Shown here: piece by piece, positions 2,098 through 18,305 of the stretch
Position numbering within the stretch: the stretch's first letter is position 1
How the letters are laid out: every line of letters begins with the position of its first letter
Assembly: GCA_946965045.2 (NCBI GenBank)
Contig: OX337240.1
Location: 2,294,001-2,358,000 of the forward strand
DNA: 64,000 nt
Source of the DNA: Epithemia pelagica
Taxonomy: Eukaryota > Protista > Bacillariophyta
Direction of reading: 5' to 3'
The notes under the pieces: generated by a model
What the model was told of the DNA's origin: nothing
Database searches by the model: none
What the model saw: only the letters and a program-made list of their open reading frames with translations
Made by a program: the position numbers and the translations under genes

Positions 2098-2695
2098 TTC
2101 ATTGCGCGCCACCACCACAACTCCATCGTGGTACGTGGACCAAGAAGAAGAAGCTCCATACATGTGGCATTGTTGGATTCTTGGATTGTCGGTATCATGG
2201 TGTTTGGCCAATGGGTCCCGTGACTTTTAGAAGCACAAAGGGATCATGCATCTAGCCCTCGCAAAACAGGAAACAATGACTAGGTAGGGTTCCACACACA
2301 ATTCTCGGCAGTGACAGATAGAGTCTCTCATCTTGAAATATTATGAACACGGTAGATGAATCATGGTAAAGTTCAATTGAGCGCATGTACTATGTGTAGG
2401 CCTTTGTCGAAAATCTACTGCTCCTTCCTTGGGGTCGGTGATTCAGGTAGACATTCCACATCAAAGATCCCTTACCATATTGTCAATTGTGATCCCATGA
2501 CCTAACCTTACTAAACTCCAGAGCTGGACAGAAGGTCGGGACGAAGGACTTCTGATTTTTGCACCTAGTCCGCTTTTTCCTTCATGAGTTCTCCCCGCTG
2601 GGGAAGAGGATTTTGATAAGATCCGGAAGTAAAACATCGCGTATCCCGGGGCGTTCGAAAAGATTCCATTTCTCCCTTCCCGCTCACAACTCACG

Positions 2696-3580
2696 ATGAC
2701 AGGATTACAGCCGCAGAGGCTCTTCTACGCTGGAAGATTGATGGGTAGATTTATGGGTATCTTCCTTCTTTTTTGCCAAGTGAGTTGTGTCTTCGGTACG
2801 ATGAGTCCTTCGCATGCTCTCGCTCCAACAGAGGGGAGAGAAGACAAGCCAACCAGAGACATCCGCACCATGGATCGGGCCAACACGATCGTTCTTGATT
2901 GCAGTGAAGCTCGAGAGGGAAATTACCATGATGACTATTATTCTTATCGACGCCACCGCGCGAAAAGCAAACATACATGTGAGATTTCAGATCATGCTCG
3001 AGGAAAGTATCGGGGTGGAAGCAACTACTGCATCTTTGAGTTCTACTCCAACACCTCCAGTGAAACAGCTTGTGCCACCAATGACAGGATTCCAACAGCG
3101 AGGAGAAAGGACTACATCAAGTACTGGCCTGATGAATGTTTGTACGATTTCCCTCGCTGTTACGACTTGGCAAACGAGAAAGATGTCTATCAAACGTATT
3201 TTTGTCAAAAGAAATGGAAAATGCTGAATTTCCCCAACATTACTCATGTGAGTGTGGACTGTTCTTTGGATGTTCAAACTCGACAACGCGAACGAAGCAT
3301 GGAATTTTGGCAAAATGTTGGCGTTGTCATCCTGGTCTGTCTATTTTACTTGGTCGTGGGAGTGGCTTGTTTCTGGTGTTGTCGCCGCTGTATCCGGGAA
3401 CTTCGAGCTACAGCCCGAGCCCACAATGAGAATCGGGACATGGAGGATTACGAGTTCACTGTTGTTTCTGTCATGTGTTGTGGTTATTGGTGCATTGTCA
3501 AACAAGCCCTACCTACCACACGTGCCGAACGATCCGGTTTGACCAATGCCTCGGTCAACCGCTCTGTAGAAATGACCTGA
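2696..3580 (+). CDS. Hypothetical type I membrane protein with Cys-rich ectodomain
   Basis: 294-aa ORF with an N-terminal hydrophobic segment, a Cys-rich middle, and a TM helix (NVGVVILVCLFYLVVGVACFWCC) followed by RR. Confidence 0.6.
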   Translation: MTGLQPQRLFYAGRLMGRFMGIFLLFCQVSCVFGTMSPSHALAPTEGREDKPTRDIRTMDRANTIVLDCSEAREGNYHDDYYSYRRHRAKSKHTCEISDHARGKYRGGSNYCIFEFYSNTSSETACATNDRIPTARRKDYIKYWPDECLYDFPRCYDLANEKDVYQTYFCQKKWKMLNFPNITHVSVDCSLDVQTRQRERSMEFWQNVGVVILVCLFYLVVGVACFWCCRRCIRELRATARAHNENRDMEDYEFTVVSVMCCGYWCIVKQALPTTRAERSGLTNASVNRSVEMT

Positions 3581-3997
3581 CGAGAGTGCAGCACCGTTCG
3601 TAGGTGAAGCATGGAATTGTTTGAATACTGGGCCGATGACCATGAATCATACTATTACGAAATAGGAGTAGGTAAGGTTAGGAGTAGATGTTCAAGGATT
3701 CTTCGGTCCTTCGATATACTCCTGAGCCTCTTGCTAGAGGTATTATTCGTATTAGGGATAAAGATATATACTGAGGTGGGCAGGCTTGAGTATGATTAGG
3801 ATAGTACTTTCTGAAGAGCAATAAGCGTGACAGTAGATGCTTCGTTTGACTCAAACAAGACCCCGCAACCCGCAACCCGCAAACGACAAATTGTCACTTG
3901 AAGGCGTCGTGCTTGGGAAGTTGGAACTGTGTTGTCGTATCATTGAACCTATTGTTGAAATAGCTGCAACATTCCAACTGATTCACAGTTCTACATC

Positions 3998-4543: not shown

Positions 4544-5109
4544 GAGGGGAAGCATTTTCATCCATAATTTTGTGGATGCAAGGATGGTATCCAAAGTCAA
4601 TTCCAGGGATGCGCTTTTGCTCTCTTCGAATGCCTCAGTATCAAACGAATGAAGGTGTTTTGTACTCTAGTCATTTCCGCTGATCCTTTCAACAGTTTAT
4701 TATTAGATCAGTCAACGTTCACTGCAAAACTTTTTCTTGTTTGGTTGTTTGGTACAAGCCGTCAATGCATGGCGACCACTCGCCTCTGCCTGTACACGGT
4801 TCACTTCGCTTCTCGACGACAAAATTCGTATTCACAGTGCATTAATAGCTGCTGTTCATTGTAAAAAGGAGCGAAATCGATCCAATGTTCGACCACAATC
4901 ATCCATCGTATGGAGGAAACGAGGACCAACATGCGACCACCGTCAATCTCGCATCTCGCGACCACAACAAGAACTTATGCTAGTTTCTCTAGAAGAATCA
5001 AAAAAACGATCAACATCACGAAACAACGACGTGAACTACAATCCGGACGACCCAAACACCATCCAAGCCAACGGAGGGAGTCCACTACGTACCTGAGAGC
5101 CCGCGTCCG

Positions 5110-8100
5110 ATGGTCACGCCTAGGGGGCGAAACGCGGACCCGCCATGGGTTTTTTTGGCTGCAAACCGAACTCCCATGGTCCACCCACGACCGAAATGCC
5201 GATCCGGCGCAACCGCACCCCCGCCAATCGGGACAAAACACATGAATCGCATGGCGAACCAACCTATGACCATGCAAACGCTCCATGGTCTGAGGAAATC
5301 CAAACCAAACGACCACGACGGCATACAGGCCCACCATGGTGCCCAAAAGGCCCAAAAGGCCCAAAGAAAAACCCCGGAGTCCAACACCAACGGTCATCCG
5401 CTCCCCACTCCAGCGACACGCCACAGCCAAACCGACACCCACACGAGGCAGGAGGAAAACAACCAACCAGGACCCGCCTCCAGGCCAGCCCACCAACCAA
5501 CAAACCGTCCTCAACCACCAACCAATCAAACCGGCACCAAACAATCGATGAACAGGAAAAGACACGACGCTACAGCCGTCCACCCACTCCCCGGCCAACT
5601 TCAACACCCAGACAACACCACGGCACCAAGAGCCGCAACAAGAACCACCGCCACCCAGACCGACCCACCGACACTTGTCGGCATCCAAGGACACATCCCA
5701 GATGGACCGAACCGAGCACCCAACAAGGGAAGACAACCGGCCAGTCATTTGCGAGCAATGAATGGTCATAGTCATAAAGCCAACTCATCGCAAGAAACGA
5801 ACAACGAAACCATCCTCACAAAAAATACGAAAACCAAGAGTTTTCCCCAGATTCGAACACCACCAGCACCCAGCAGCAACAACGCCGACAACAACCCACC
5901 AGCATCAACCATGCAAGTCCACTCCAAGCCCTCCTCCGGCCGCCGTCAGTCACGTGCCAAATCGCAAGGCCCAGCCAAACCCTTCTCGTACAACGACTCC
6001 ACCACCATTACCGCCATCACCCCTGAACGCCGCTCCCTCATCAACAAAACCAAAACCATCGCCCAAGAAAACAACAAACAAAAAGAAACAATGATTCCGA
6101 CCGAAAACCATAAAAACAAAACCCAGAAAAATGCAGCCCTCACCATGAACATTGATCCAAACCACCAACAACACGAAGAAGTCGAAAACCACGACGACAC
6201 CGAAGCCAACCCAGACACCGGCATGCAGCAGGACAACGACAACAACCACGCCCAGGAGCACAACGGCGCCAGCCACGAAAACAAAAACGGAAGCGAACCA
6301 GGCCTTCACGACAACCAAGGAGACCCGAACGGCCAAGCCCACAACGATGACCCCAACGACGCCGACCCGGCAAACAATGAGACGGAGGAAGAAGAAATGA
6401 ACGACGACGCCCAAACCAACACGGCAGCCAGCCCCTCCAACCCTTACCGCACCCTCAGGCAACCCCAAAAGCGCGCCCCTTCCCCAGAACCGGCGATGCT
6501 TATCCACCTACACGTCATGGTCAACCACAATCCGAACCCGCAAGCGGAATCGGCTCTGCCCCGTCTTACCGAACAAGCGGTCAAAGACCACTTGAACCAG
6601 GTATTTTTCCACCACAGCAAGCGCGAAGAGCCCATGTGGCTTCAAGTGCACAAAGTTGAATTCATTGAAACCAAACAAGCTGGACGCCCGAGCTTCCGCC
6701 AAAACGACCAACAGCGTCAACGCAACAACAACGGACATGTATCATCCTTCCATGTCACCTTGTCCCCCGCCCCCGCCAACGACGCCTTCGACACAGAAGT
6801 TTTCCGCGAACAAGGCCTTCGGTGTGTGCTACAGATGTGGCACCGTCACAAGAATGACGACTTCTCCCACGACGATTTCGGCGACCCAAGCATCCTGCGG
6901 AACGGAACGCCACAATCCAACCCAACCACCAACCCGCGCTGGGACCAATACAACGTGTACCTCCCAGCAAACAACAACAGGACCAGCGACACCTTCGGGA
7001 TGGTTGTTGGGATTCCAGCACAAGCCATTAAACACCGTCGGGCGGCACAGGACTTGACGGCAGCAATTCAGCACTCCCTCCGAGCCCATCTTCCACGCAA
7101 GCTGGACTGGACGGCCTTCTTCGACCACATCGGGTGCCGATCCGGAACCTTTAGTGGAGAACTCAAAAGCAAACAAAGAGGACAGGTCCCCGTCGTCTAC
7201 ATCACGGCCTCGTCTCGGGCCAACTTCGAACTGCTATTGCGCAGTTACAATGCATTCACAGCAGCCAACAGGGACACCGACATCACGTGGCAAGACAACA
7301 AGATCCAACTCATTCCGATGCCCAAAACCCAAACGAATCGAACAACGACGTTGGAAACAATTAAAGACATTGACCAATTCTTTGGTTCAAGCGTCAAGAT
7401 CCGCCTCCGTCCGATCAACACAGAAGCAACGGACGGCGATTGGAAACAACTCAAAACAATGGACGAGTACATCGCCGTATTCCCCGAATACGACAATGAA
7501 GATCCGGACCCCATCTACTACACATTGATCATGCGAAAGACACCGGACACACACCACTTGACCACCAATACAATCCGCACGCATCCAGGATTCCCGACTA
7601 ATATCCTGCTGCCTACTCTGGCCGCCGTGGCGGCAACCCCTCCGCGGCAACCAAGCACCAACCAGGACACACCGACATCCTCCACTCACACCAACAGGCT
7701 CATCGCCTTCGCAGACCGACTACTACGACGAAAGACCAACTCGGCAGAGGACCACAACCACCAACCAACAACATCAACCAGAGCTCGCAACACTCCACCA
7801 GGCACACCGCCTCCGACAAAAAGAACCGCCACCCACTTTTCAGACGACGGCAATGACGACGACGAAGATCCTTACAACGACGGCACAGACTGGACACAGG
7901 TCGCGACAAACATGGACCACAGCCACCAATACAATCGGCTCGCACACAAACCTGCGCAAAACGACGACCGCAAACCACCGGCACAACAAAACAGCTTTTC
8001 CGCCCTCGCAGAAGATGAACACTCCCACAACAACAAACGCCACCACGACGAGGACGACGTGGACAGAATGGAGACGGAAGAAGACAACGACGACGCACAC

Positions 8101-14386: not shown

Positions 14387-15758
14387 CTACGCTTTGTCCA
14401 CTGCCAACGGTTCCCACCAACGGATCATCACTGTCCCATCATCATGGAGAGGTTTGACAATGTGCTCCGCAGGAGGGTAGTTGCTGGTGTTGGGAATGTG
14501 ATAGGGTCTTTGGGCGTTGCGGTAGGCGACACGAGTCTTGTCTCGAACTGTTTTCGGCGTTTGCCACTGGGTCGTTGGGGTATCGGGTGGCAAATCATGT
14601 CGCACAAAGGACACTTCGGGTTGTAACAAGCAAAAGGCTCGGCCGGTCCCAAAGGCAAATCGACTGCGTGCAGGGATAACACGGTGCAAACGACGTGACA
14701 AAAAAGTCCATCCCCGCAAACCGAAACCTCCATCCTCGTGCGCCAATGTACTGGACACGCATGACAAATTCCTTGCAAGGATCGAGATCGGAGAGACTTT
14801 TCAAGAGCAGGTATACACAGTGCCCAAACAGAGCCACACTAGTACCCCGTGCATCGGCATGGTCCAGTTCCAGGCAAAAACCATCCAATCGCTCACCCCG
14901 TCTGCAACAATGAACAAAATGGCAAAGGGCAGCATTGTTTGCCTTTGCTTGTTCCACAAACTGGTGTTCTAAAGATCTGGTTTTTTCGGCTGATTGTTCT
15001 TCCATTGATTTGCCACCCCATAGTTTGGCGCTCTTGGCAAAGGGACACTCTGTCTGGTTTTTGATGGGAGCAAATCTCTGGAGTGTGACATTTCCTTGGT
15101 TTTCCGTCAGTGCATAGTCTGGTCGATCCGGCAGAGCTGCCTTGGTTCTTTCAGATAATAATGACACATCATGCGAATCTCCCCATTGAGGTTCAGGATT
15201 GGACAAGAGATCCGCCATTTGCGTCAAAGCTTGCTCCAGACCATTGTTTTTCCCCGAGATTGCCGACAAGCCAAGAATCGCTACGCGCCGATCTTTTATG
15301 TTTTTCAGTTCCAATCGCTGACTGATATCATGAGGAGACAACGCATTGGCAAGGTCTTGCTTGTTGCAAAGAATGAGAAAGGGTACCCTCACAAGTTTGG
15401 GTTCCCTCGTCATTTGATGAACCTCGTCGTACACTTGGTCCATCCGGTCGATATTACTAGAGTCGACGACAAACACGACGCACTCGGTTTGCTGGTAATA
15501 GTGCCGCCAAAGCGCCCGAGCCTTGTCGCGACCTCCCACATCCCATGCCTCCACAACCACAACCGGGATTCGTCCTTGGCTCTTTTTGGGAGACACGCAA
15601 AGTTCTTCCACATTAAATCCAATGGTGGGAATGCTGTGGACAACCTCTTCTCCACCCAATTTCCATTTATACAATATCGTGGTCTTGCCAGAACCATCCA
15701 GTCCATTCATCAACACCCTCCGTCTTTGTTGTTTGGTGGTAGAAAGGAAAGCACCCAT
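14387..15758 (-). CDS. Arf-family small GTPase fused to a YqcI/YcgG-like domain; frameshift at ~14665
   Basis: MGAFLS myristoylation motif, [28 protein letters not shown]. Then CPFAK, LSDLDP and [21 protein letters not shown], continuing in another frame as SRFAFG...LLQPEVSF to a stop at 14387. Confidence 0.75.
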
Positions 15759-16430
15759 GGTTCCAACCGTTGTGTACCAGTCGAAAGAATGGCATATCTG
15801 TTTCCCATCCACGGCCTAACTTCGAGCCGTCGATCGAGTCGTGGGTGAAGGATTACATCGATCACCGGGTTCATTCTCGACATGACTCATTTGGGGAGAC
15901 GTGTACCGATGATAGAATTGACGGTGAGCTCTTGCATGGAAGCAACTAATAAGTAACCACGACCATCACCGGGCCCAAGCTTTTCATGTCTTTGATGTTG
16001 AACCAATTTGGTTGCCATCCATTATTCTTTTGTATTACCAGCTTATTCCACGCCTGTATGAGCTCGTCATCATGAGAACGACTTCAAAATCGTCGCTTGA
16101 GCCCGCCATGGAGATTTGTGTGTGAATTGGGTTATCTTCTTGCATCGTCACTTCCTCCACGAAGAGGTGATGCACGCTCGGAAGTCGACAGGGTGTCTGT
16201 CGGTTAGTAAATCTAACGAAGGTACTACGAAGCGTTTTACGTTCCATGACTGGAGCGGGGGTTTCAGTCTTGGGGGATCGGCTTCACACTTCTCTCTCAC
16301 ACCTTGCTTTGGTAGATTGCAAAAAGTAGAAAATGGCATGGCCGCATCCTCAAGACGAGGATCTTCCTGCAACTGTCGTTTCTACTCCTCCAATTAATAC
16401 CTACTCCACTGATTCAAAACGTTTTATATC

Positions 16431-18305
16431 ATGGATGTGCTGCTGATTGCCGGTTCTCTGACACTTCCCGTGTATTTGGGAAGGCAATTGTCCAATGTGG
16501 TTGTTTCCCATCCAACCACCTTTCAACCACAAGCAACAACGACATCTTCCCTCGAGAAGAAGCCTTTTCCACGAATCACTTCGGCCGTTCCCAGAGTACC
16601 CTTGGCCCTGCTGGTATCGACAGTCCTTTCTTTTTTCCTACTTTCGCTGTCCATCCTGGAGGCTGTTCCATCGTCATGGAGGATGGTTCTTCGGGCACCT
16701 TTGCTTCCAACAGCATACCGAATAGTCTTTGGCATCTTGGCCATGGCCGTTTTTATCATCTTTCCCTTTGTGGCCGGGGCACAACAGCAGGCATTGCTGG
16801 AACAGGGTTGGTGTCGCCGAAACGATTCTTCGAGTGAAGACTCCTCTGGCCTGAAAAAGGGCAGGGCGAGTCATTCGTGGGTTCGTTCGTGCCTCTTTTC
16901 CATGTTGCTTCTCCTGTTTCGAGTCCTTCTTGGAGCTTTCTATTGTTGTTACGCTGTTCTTCCCTCACTATATCGATCTCACCGAAAAGAAAAGGGTCCC
17001 CTGCTTGTCACATCTTCTGCCGATTTGGCCAGAAAGGAAAGCAATGTATCAAATACAGAATCTACCAGCAACTCCTCTCGTTCCCCACGATTTCAACTTC
17101 ACACAAGATTTCTTGGAGGTTTTCTCGGATGCTTTCTTGTTCTCTGTATTCTGTGTATCCTGGGACCATGGGTGGTCAAGACAACACCCAGCACACCGGC
17201 ACTTACCGTTGCCGTGTCATGGTTGACAGCTGTGGGGTTGCTCCTTTCGGCCTGTATTAACGGTTTTGGCAGCGTTTCAATGCCTCATTCCTGTTTGGCA
17301 GGATTCTACCTGGAACCTATTCGTTCCGAGGCCATTTCCAAAGCACAAGAAGAAATTCAACTGGCCGAAAATTCCCTACAAGCCCGAAAAGACCAATTGT
17401 CGTCCCTTTCAGGAGGAGGGTTGGTCATCCCTCAGGCAACATCCAACAATATACCTCGAGGAATGTCTTTTTCAGAAATGGGTGAAGATGTCGTATTGCG
17501 GAGAAAGAACTTGAAAACAGAAATTGAATTCCTGGAAACCTTAGTGGCCGAAATGAAGGATGAGGCCGAGGACATGCAACAAATGCAAGCGTTGGCCGCC
17601 AATGCTCGAACTCCACTGGGTCGGTGCAAACTGTGGCTTGGTCTCATTTTTTCCCTGGTGTTAATAGTCCGTCTCTTTTCGGCCCTCTTGTTCTTGTGGA
17701 ATCACAAGGATGGAAAACATCACCAAAAGACAACGGGCAGTGATCCCATTACCATGATTCTATTGTGGTTGGTCGGTCACGACTATGTCACGCAACAAGA
17801 CTACAATACGCTTTCGCAGTTTATTTCATGTGTCTTGACAGCGATTCTAAGCGTCTCACAAGTTCGGACCTTTCTCCGAACCATGGATCTCGTTAATCGG
17901 AAGCTCCGACATTTCTATCAACACGTGCCGTGTTGCCTGTCGAATGGTTCCGGTTCTTGTGCATCGACCAGCAATAGCAGCAGCGGCCATGTTTCGAGCT
18001 TGTATGCAAATTTCCTGGCCTGTTTGATGGTGTGTTATTTTCTTTCATGCATCGTCTTGACTAAACTCATGTTGCCACCCGATTACCGAGCTGCCTTTTC
18101 GCATGCCTTGGGAGGAGCTGAAACGGACTCGGTTCTCAAGATTCGTTCTTATTCTCTCAATCTTACCTTTACTCTTTCGGCCACAGTGACAGCATTTATC
18201 CTTGGCATCTTCTTGGAGATTCAGAGACAAAACACCATTCGACACTTGTCGGTATGGAAATCGGCCAACACCATGGATCATTCTACCACCATTACAGAGC
18301 CCTGA
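16431..18305 (+). CDS. GPR89/GPHR (Golgi pH regulator, GTG-like) multi-pass membrane protein
   Basis: About 9 TM segments, the motif GLLLSACINGFGSVSMP, a central coiled coil, and the C-terminal SQFISCVLTAILSVSQVRTFL region. Confidence 0.75.
   Translation: MDVLLIAGSLTLPVYLGRQLSNVVVSHPTTFQPQATTTSSLEKKPFPRITSAVPRVPLALLVSTVLSFFLLSLSILEAVPSSWRMVLRAPLLPTAYRIVFGILAMAVFIIFPFVAGAQQQALLEQGWCRRNDSSSEDSSGLKKGRASHSWVRSCLFSMLLLLFRVLLGAFYCCYAVLPSLYRSHRKEKGPLLVTSSADLARKESNVSNTESTSNSSRSPRFQLHTRFLGGFLGCFLVLCILCILGPWVVKTTPSTPALTVAVSWLTAVGLLLSACINGFGSVSMPHSCLAGFYLEPIRSEAISKAQEEIQLAENSLQARKDQLSSLSGGGLVIPQATSNNIPRGMSFSEMGEDVVLRRKNLKTEIEFLETLVAEMKDEAEDMQQMQALAANARTPLGRCKLWLGLIFSLVLIVRLFSALLFLWNHKDGKHHQKTTGSDPITMILLWLVGHDYVTQQDYNTLSQFISCVLTAILSVSQVRTFLRTMDLVNRKLRHFYQHVPCCLSNGSGSCASTSNSSSGHVSSLYANFLACLMVCYFLSCIVLTKLMLPPDYRAAFSHALGGAETDSVLKIRSYSLNLTFTLSATVTAFILGIFLEIQRQNTIRHLSVWKSANTMDHSTTITEP

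Follow-up and report, generated by a model that had tools for sequence, protein, structure and literature searches.

The window analysed here, a stretch of 64,000 nt from the diatom Epithemia pelagica (contig OX337240.1, positions 2,294,001 to 2,358,000 of the forward strand), carries on its minus strand one copy (tblastn) of a gene that joins an Arf-family GTPase to a YqcI/YcgG-like domain of about 245 aa. These two domain identities are close to certain. The explanation that accounts best for the locus, and that we consider reasonably probable, is that it holds a member of a conserved, unstudied Arf-YqcI/YcgG gene family which is broken in the sequenced strain. A preliminary description of the sequence had taken 14387-15758 as one reading frame, but the span is 1372 nt long, which is not divisible by 3: the ATG frame runs uninterrupted and without an intron from 15758-15756 to a stop at 14597-14595, giving a product of 387 aa (100% identical to the public gene model P0001, on a 1.41-Mb contig), and the last ~92 conserved codons (14665-14390, stop 14389-14387) lie in a different frame from the ATG. 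Both domains begin in a single uninterrupted open reading frame (ORF), as the Arf domain and the Cys-bearing part of the C-terminal domain are in the ATG frame. The features of the gene are listed below; residues of AglA refer to the bacterial enzyme discussed further on.

14387..15758, minus strand: whole Arf-YqcI/YcgG gene, limits set by homology; single exon in two reading frames owing to a 2-nt deletion
15756..15758, minus strand: start codon, followed by Gly2 and Ser6 (MGAFLS; N-myristoylation consensus)
15213..15734, minus strand: Arf-family GTPase domain, residues 9-182 (PF00025, E 6.6e-49)
15681..15704, minus strand: P-loop GLDGSGKT, residues 19-26 (motif and alignment)
15528..15542, minus strand: switch II DVGGR, with Arg77 at 15530-15528 where Arf1 has the catalytic Gln71 (Arf1 alignment)
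15354..15365, minus strand: NKQD guanine-specificity motif, residues 132-135
15114..15212, minus strand: linker of variable length, weakly conserved, residues 183-215 (alignment A1, columns 200-270)
14667..15113, minus strand: first two thirds of the YqcI/YcgG domain, residues 216-364, ending ...FAPCYPCT (ATG frame)
15045..15047, minus strand: Cys238 in ECPFA, the only invariant Cys and probable heme thiolate ligand
14666..14667, minus strand: frame break; two bases absent between 14667 and 14666, leaving orphan base 14666
14595..14666, minus strand: out-of-frame tail QSICLW...LCAT and stop of the predicted 387-aa product
14387..14665, minus strand: final third of the YqcI/YcgG domain, read in the shifted frame (92 open codons and stop)
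14662-14660, minus strand: equivalent of AglA Arg166 (via the P0197-AglA map)
14623-14621, minus strand: equivalent of AglA Gln177 (same map)
14608-14606, minus strand: equivalent of AglA Phe182 (same map)
14545-14543, minus strand: equivalent of AglA Lys196 (same map)
14533-14531, minus strand: equivalent of AglA Arg200 (same map)

The break is located by comparison with intact relatives of 430-460 aa, which read ...FAPCYPxTSSRYAFGxxRAFxLLQPExSF... and continue for ~90 residues to a conserved ...AEHIVKP...WW end, whereas the ATG frame of the window reads FAPCYPCT and then QSICLW... to the stop. When the two frame pieces were searched separately, the upstream piece was 66% identical to residues 200-343 of the Epithemia orthologue P0002 and the downstream piece 55% identical to its residues 345-429; because the two matches abut at residues 343 and 345, exactly one codon is disrupted, of which base 14666 is the orphan. 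The motifs CPFA (with Cys238), LSDLDP and W-x-F-x-F-x-G-x-x-FF, on which the preliminary description had based its reading of the second domain, are all present; the letters of a fourth, P-x(4)-SR, are present as well, but they straddle the frame break, which had passed unflagged.

When the 387-aa product and a profile of C-terminal domains were used as queries, 72 proteins were recovered in which an Arf domain lies upstream of a YqcI/YcgG domain. They come from the diatoms Epithemia clementina (58% identity), Odontella, Triceratium, Cylindrotheca closterium, Entomoneis and Seminavis (a short model, P0098), and from the dinoflagellate Prorocentrum cordatum, Chromera velia and, as transcripts, the diplonemid Lacrimia. 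ORFs from the MMETSP transcriptomes of several diatoms, two of them marked complete, also carry the fusion, so that the two domains reside in one mRNA and are neither separate genes, as cDNA might have revealed, nor an artefact of gene models. Two distinct fusion transcripts are attributed to Lacrimia lanifica in EukProt (P0055, P0126) and may represent a real gene, a transfer or contamination by prey.

The assignment of the second domain to the YqcI/YcgG family, proposed in the preliminary description, withstood both profile and structural comparison. It rests on intact orthologues and on structure, because the 387-aa product itself scores only 20.9 bits against PF08892 (residues 256-362; cut-off 27); the downstream piece alone has no match in Pfam. 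PF08892 matches 10 of 11 orthologue domains (best E 2.7e-9), bacterial relatives that are 27-36% identical over their full length score 44-46 bits, and all 30 of the 30 feature matches in the ESM Atlas are YqcI/YcgG clusters; NCBIfam holds no model for this YqcI/YcgG subfamily. An AlphaFold2 (AF2) model was built from 78 sequences for the C-terminal domain of the closest intact relative (P0002:199-435) rather than for the split sequence of the window, with a mean predicted local distance difference test score (pLDDT) of 95.7 and a predicted template modelling score (pTM) of 0.92. Foldseek matched this model in the PDB to five entries only, all of them AglA of Streptomyces monomycini (9ub3, 9ub5, 9uba, 9ubb and 9ubs; probability 1.00, E 1.6e-5 to 1.6e-4, template modelling score 0.59-0.67), the next match having E 0.47, and VIA-align superposed it on AglA with Z 17.4-17.5 and a root-mean-square deviation (rmsd) of 3.0-3.2 Å over 208-211 residues, the next Z being 3.9. 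The two proteins thus have the same fold over some 210 of 237 residues. The heme-bearing oxygenase domains of nitric oxide synthase (NOS), in many entries, trail AglA in this comparison, at Z 3.0-3.6 over ~150 residues with rmsd above 5 Å; kinship with them was considered and rejected, as these Z values were judged not significant.

Among the YqcI/YcgG thiolate-heme guanidine N-hydroxylases, AglA serves as the structural prototype: Cys44 is the iron ligand, Arg166, Lys196 and Arg200 bind the heme propionates, and Gln177, Phe152 and Phe182 set the guanidine in position over the iron (PMC12866846). Of its relatives, GntA and ChmN are heme N-oxygenases, the heme ligand of ChmN being Cys47, and DcsA binds heme but was inactive in vitro (bioRxiv 10.1101/2024.01.24.577118); the family described here has in common with this group a Cys-bearing CPF-type motif and, in its intact orthologues, the match to PF08892. 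Residues were mapped by aligning the bacterial-type protein P0197 to AglA residues 130-212 (E 3.6e-4) and carrying the result through alignment A3, whose 78 relatives supply the conservation counts. The equivalents of Phe152, Arg166, Gln177 and Arg200 are invariant (F, R, Q and R, respectively, each 78/78) and that of Phe182 nearly so (F, 77/78), whereas Lys196 of AglA is replaced by Arg (76/78) and Arg179 by Glu (62/78). The family differs from AglA further in an extra conserved C-terminal segment, AEHIVKP...WW. K196R is one of the mutations that give AglA the ability to hydroxylate L-arginine in its free form, and the natural Arg at this position is therefore a weak hint at small, free guanidino substrates. 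The Cys of CPFA is the sole invariant Cys (78/78) and is the putative heme ligand, presumably equivalent to AglA Cys44. That equivalence stays inferred because most PDB sequence searches did not find AglA, namely those with the fused-domain profiles A2 and A3, with the N-terminal half of P0197 and with a Micromonospora relative; full-length P0197 reached AglA with the E-value given above, and a 3-sequence profile did so weakly.

The N-terminal module is an Arf domain, as had been described, with a score of 166.2 bits against PF00025 (cut-off 22.3) and Arf1 and Arf6 as its best solved relatives (E ~1e-37). The P-loop (G1), the switch I motif PTIGFN with its Thr, and NKQD (G4) are intact, as in Arf1 and Arf6. 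The N-terminus MGAFLS is consistent with N-myristoylation, so that lipidation is predicted; Gly2 is found in 43 of 71 fusion sequences, the remainder being mostly 5'-incomplete, and 37 of the 43 complete N-termini with Gly2 have Ser or Thr at position 6. The module differs from Arf1 and Arf6 in an interswitch loop longer by 8-9 residues, in the enzyme-like extension of 270 aa that follows the GTPase, and in the G3 motif, which instead of DxxGQ reads DVGGR with Arg77. The position of Arf1 Gln71 is occupied by Arg in 53 of the 55 fusions in which the motif was found and by Asn and Gly in the other two, but never by Gln; among other Arf proteins in the same match list, Gln occupies it in 96 of 105 occurrences of the motif. 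The Q71L form of Arf1 is locked in the GTP-bound state, and the replacement of Gln71 by Arg accordingly suggests impaired GTP hydrolysis: the Arf module is probably slow in, or incapable of, hydrolysing GTP. With the catalytic Gln replaced throughout the clade, classical nucleotide switching is doubtful.

Eukaryotes also possess stand-alone homologues of the second domain, of about 300 aa, in Branchiostoma, the scallop Ylistrum, the snail Nucella, the sponge Ephydatia, Thecamoeba, Arcella, Rhodelphis and Cyanophora. These proteins, likewise uncharacterised, are 38-46% identical to the fused domain, keep all of its key residues, and carry an N-terminal hydrophobic anchor of ~20 residues where the fusions have Arf. 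By the classical membrane-span criterion (a 19-residue window with a Kyte-Doolittle mean of at least 1.6), such an anchor is present in 26 of the 35 stand-alone eukaryotic homologues whose N-terminal extension is complete, compared with 1 of 72 fusions; among the nine that lack it, several are pieces of Arf fusions. In bacterial relatives the domain stands bare, with a length of ~230 aa. The simplest reading of this pattern is that the eukaryotic enzyme would be active at a membrane and that, in one lineage, its anchoring passed to Arf. Membrane recruitment, as put forward in the preliminary description, is thus plausible, given the conserved Gly2 and the anchors of the stand-alone homologues, but the nucleotide regulation offered beside it is doubtful in view of the change from Gln to Arg. 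The animal members (P0135, P0136, P0144, P0146, P0145, P0150 and P0154, from amphioxus, scallop, snail and sponge) are uncharacterised YqcI/YcgG-like proteins with a predicted N-terminal anchor in all but the sponge protein, whose model lacks its N-terminus; they make up an unstudied family of putative heme enzymes in Metazoa.

The explanation that we propose is as follows. An Arf-type GTPase, predicted to be N-myristoylated, is joined to a domain with the non-P450 thiolate-heme 'sandwich' fold of AglA, GntA and ChmN; this C-terminal domain would bind heme through the invariant Cys of CPFA, with three invariant or nearly invariant Arg residues holding the propionates, and would N-oxygenate a small guanidino compound that probably resembles arginine, a separate reductase supplying the electrons; the Arf module would act mainly as a lipid-anchored membrane tether in place of the N-terminal transmembrane anchor of the stand-alone homologues, more a GTP-held anchor than a fast switch, its catalytic Gln being Arg; and in the sequenced strain a 2-bp deletion after CYPCT, present on both haplotypes, shifts the frame and probably yields a null allele, another strain keeping the frame. 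That the intact protein is a membrane-tethered guanidine N-oxygenase is a tentative suggestion from conserved residues and a modelled fold, nearly as likely to hold as to fail, and the role of Arf as a GTP-held anchor is put forward with slightly less assurance.

Several points weigh against this explanation. The intact orthologues score 25.8-35.8 bits against PF08892, borderline with respect to the cut-off, and the identity to AglA is only 14-15%. The pairing of Cys27 with Cys44 was not displayed residue by residue by any tool. Arg179, which in AglA binds the substrate backbone, is Glu here, so that the substrate may be other than an arginine derivative. The window gene has no reductase fused or adjacent to it, nor does a biosynthetic cluster lie beside it, in contrast to the AglA group, and the two bacterial gene neighbourhoods inspected (L001, L006) gave no hint of a partner or pathway. 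The full-length AF2 model has a pTM of only 0.64, and the interface between Arf and enzyme is too uncertain to call. Finally, we know of no Arf with Arg at the Gln71 position that has been tested, so that a GTPase-dead state is our inference.

The same observations could be accommodated if the heme domain were a sensor, in which binding of heme, O2 or nitric oxide (NO) controls the nucleotide state or effector binding of Arf, or the reverse. The heme-binding residues are invariant while Arg179 of AglA is not kept, the clade-wide loss of the Arf catalytic Gln suggests non-canonical regulation, and DcsA offers a precedent for heme binding without activity in vitro (bioRxiv 10.1101/2024.01.24.577118). 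A sensor is nevertheless unlikely, as the guanidine-positioning residues Gln177, Phe152 and Phe182 are also kept (77-78/78), the stand-alone anchored homologues have no signalling partner domain, and every characterised active member of the family is an N-oxygenase.

The window locus had been taken to encode an intact enzyme; its copy has a shifted frame and probably does not function. The deletion lies immediately ahead of the equivalent of Arg166, and the 387-aa product retains the Cys together with the first strands of the fold but is without the strand AFxLLQPE (the last beta-strand), helix alpha5 and the L2-like C-terminal segment. Since the heme-propionate residues (the equivalents of AglA Arg166, Lys196 and Arg200) are encoded only past the frame break, they are missing from the predicted product, as are Gln177 and Phe182; unlike AglA, the window copy ends before the first of these. 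With the last beta-strand, alpha5, L2 and all three propionate binders lost, the copy is most probably a recent null allele, its truncated product having probably lost its function. The truncated product might instead have kept a function, perhaps that of an Arf provided with a new C-terminal module: neither the Arf domain nor the Cys-bearing part is put out of frame, and short gene models exist in other diatoms (Seminavis P0098, 348 aa; P0100; P0116). This is improbable, because the truncation removes a central beta-strand together with every propionate-binding residue, no stretch of the family is more strongly conserved than the part that is lost, and the short models elsewhere may stem from faulty annotation or be pseudogenes, comparable to a decayed tandem copy in a related diatom genome (L012, below).

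The fusion arose once. In a maximum-likelihood tree of 78 C-terminal domains, all 36 Arf-fused rows fall in one clade (Shimodaira-Hasegawa-like approximate likelihood ratio support, SH-aLRT, 100), which also takes in eight rows assumed to be fragments, and the anchored forms lie outside it. The preliminary description had suggested horizontal transfer followed by fusion; as an event in diatoms this gives way to a eukaryote-wide subfamily, with the fusions as one clade nested within it. A recent transfer of a bacterial YqcI/YcgG gene into diatoms, with Arf fused to it afterwards, would agree with the mainly bacterial distribution of the family, with the bacterial closest clusters in the ESM Atlas, and with bacterial homologues that share the same motifs over their full length at the 27-36% identity noted above (Anoxybacillus, alphaproteobacterial metagenome-assembled genomes, Actinosynnema, Micromonospora and Trinickia). 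It is quite improbable and, on the sequences compared, not supported, because the nearest relatives of the fused domains are the eukaryotic transmembrane-anchored proteins (animals, amoebae, Rhodelphis, Cyanophora), at 38-46% identity, and the fused clade is nested among them. A bacterial origin, if any, predates the eukaryotic radiation of YqcI/YcgG-like proteins.

The architecture had been called unrecognised, which holds for the literature searched but not for the databases: full-text searches on YqcI, YcgG, PF08892, IPR014988 and COG3403 returned bacterial work only and no description of the fusion, yet the protein is already present, unnamed, in public protein sets (for example those of Cylindrotheca and Epithemia). 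The catalogue of multidomain ARFs of Vargova et al. (2021), in the text and supplements consulted in part, includes an Emiliania Arf with a 2-oxoglutarate-Fe(II) (2OG-Fe(II)) oxygenase, TRIM23 and Arl17, with the speculation by its authors that the GTPase regulates the fused enzyme; a YqcI/YcgG partner is not mentioned in those parts (PMC8358228). The fusion described here resembles these proteins in joining Arf to a non-GTPase, sometimes enzymatic, domain, and differs from those catalogued in the parts consulted in that the enzyme is C-terminal and that its distribution covers several algal phyla, not a single lineage.

YqcI/YcgG enzymes constitute a recently recognised second class of thiolate-heme oxygenases, structurally distinct from the first, and the characterised members are all bacterial natural-product enzymes. 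The eukaryotic branch, in contrast to AglA, is seemingly always directed to a membrane, by a hydrophobic anchor or by Arf, which would imply a new guanidine-oxidising reaction at a eukaryotic membrane. Microsomal cytochromes P450 are thiolate-heme enzymes with an N-terminal membrane anchor and a separate reductase, and NOS is a thiolate-heme enzyme that N-hydroxylates arginine; the likeness to both is one of analogy only, their folds being unrelated to that of the YqcI/YcgG domain. For the study of Arf proteins, a multi-phylum fusion with a systematic change from Gln to Arg constitutes a natural test of a constitutive lipid anchor for an enzyme. A far wider proposition, speculative and doubtful as it stands, is that eukaryotes (sponges, molluscs, amphioxus, amoebae and algae) have unrecognised membrane-bound non-P450 thiolate-heme N-hydroxylases of arginine or related guanidines, and that in diatoms, dinoflagellates and chromerids a myristoylated Arf impaired in hydrolysis took the place of their transmembrane anchor. 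If true, this would be the first Arf GTPase to serve as the built-in membrane-recruitment module of a heme oxygenase, it might supply N-hydroxyarginine or NO in diatoms without a canonical NOS, and the sequenced strain would be a natural knock-out.

The frame break was compared with public reads. Four public runs labelled with the same organism hold the locus: X1 and X2, from samples S1 and S2, and X3 and X4, from sample S3, which is ~3% diverged from the window. In X1 and X2, a 280-nt unitig spans 14426-14705 with zero differences from the window and no alternative form at the deletion site, and its depth in X1 (125) approximates the sum of the flanking haplotype unitigs (~64 + 84). In X3 and X4, the sole form has GA inserted behind plus-strand 14666, which restores the coding-strand sequence ...CYPCTSSRFAFG... 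and with it CYPCTSSRF, the family consensus. S3 also has two in-frame 3-nt deletions, at 14997 and, in the linker, at 15167, and no stop arises from the substitutions listed for it, a list that lacks two of the differences; the frame of the S3 strain is open for ~455 codons. The sequenced strain thus very probably carries a genuine 2-bp deletion in both haplotypes, and the lesion looks recent, as the 92 codons that follow it remain open and conserved. If the break were instead an assembly or sequencing error, with the strain in fact encoding an intact protein of ~457 aa, the downstream frame would be open and conserved in just this way, but such an error is very improbable given the exactly deleted sequence in read contigs of two separate samples (X1, X2), the summed haplotype depth, the single unitig, the non-homopolymer context (acg|cag) and the 387-aa length of P0001.

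Three further points tell against the proposed explanation: X1 and X2 are possibly the assembly's own samples, and as such exclude an assembly error but do not represent an independent strain; no public RNA run holding the locus was found; and the fixed differences between strains, at 14 synonymous to 19 non-synonymous, indicate only moderate constraint. The variable linker accounts for many of these differences, together with a hypervariable loop at 14956-14997. The polymorphism itself, frame-shifted in one strain and intact in the other, is a ready genetic contrast for comparisons of metabolites and phenotype.

A mini-intron of 19 nt (gtgttatccctgcacgcag) was considered as a means of restoring the frame and was rejected, because it would remove the conserved CYPxT motif, because known diatom introns are much longer than 19 nt, and because what distinguishes the second strain at the site is an indel of exactly 2 nt. 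A minor unitig confined to X2 (depth 24 of ~250) contains an additional base at 14699, within the T6 run of GACTTTTTTGTC; the frame stays broken in this form, which is probably homopolymer noise. The hypervariable loop, which belongs to the heme domain, has 10 substitutions in 33 nt in addition to the 3-nt deletion of S3. Just upstream of the ATG (15761-15813 region), S3 has an 8-nt insertion (TCTCTTAA, plus strand), and its contigs no longer match the window past 15813, so that the promoter region differs between the strains.

Head-to-head with the Arf-YqcI/YcgG gene, with ~670 bp between the start codons, lies a 624-aa ORF on the plus strand (16431-18305) of the Golgi pH regulator / ABA_GPCR family (PF12430, E 2.5e-15; PF12537, E 9.6e-7); this neighbour is not conserved beside the orthologue in the related pennate diatom genome L012. 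There, an intact fusion gene at 5001-6311 has a tandem copy upstream, at 2475-3850 (plus strand), which contains several frame shifts, one of them across the CPFA motif, and is thus a pseudogene. P0117, on another large contig, seems to be part of a copy that decayed in a similar way, and decay of gene copies is not unique to the window locus.

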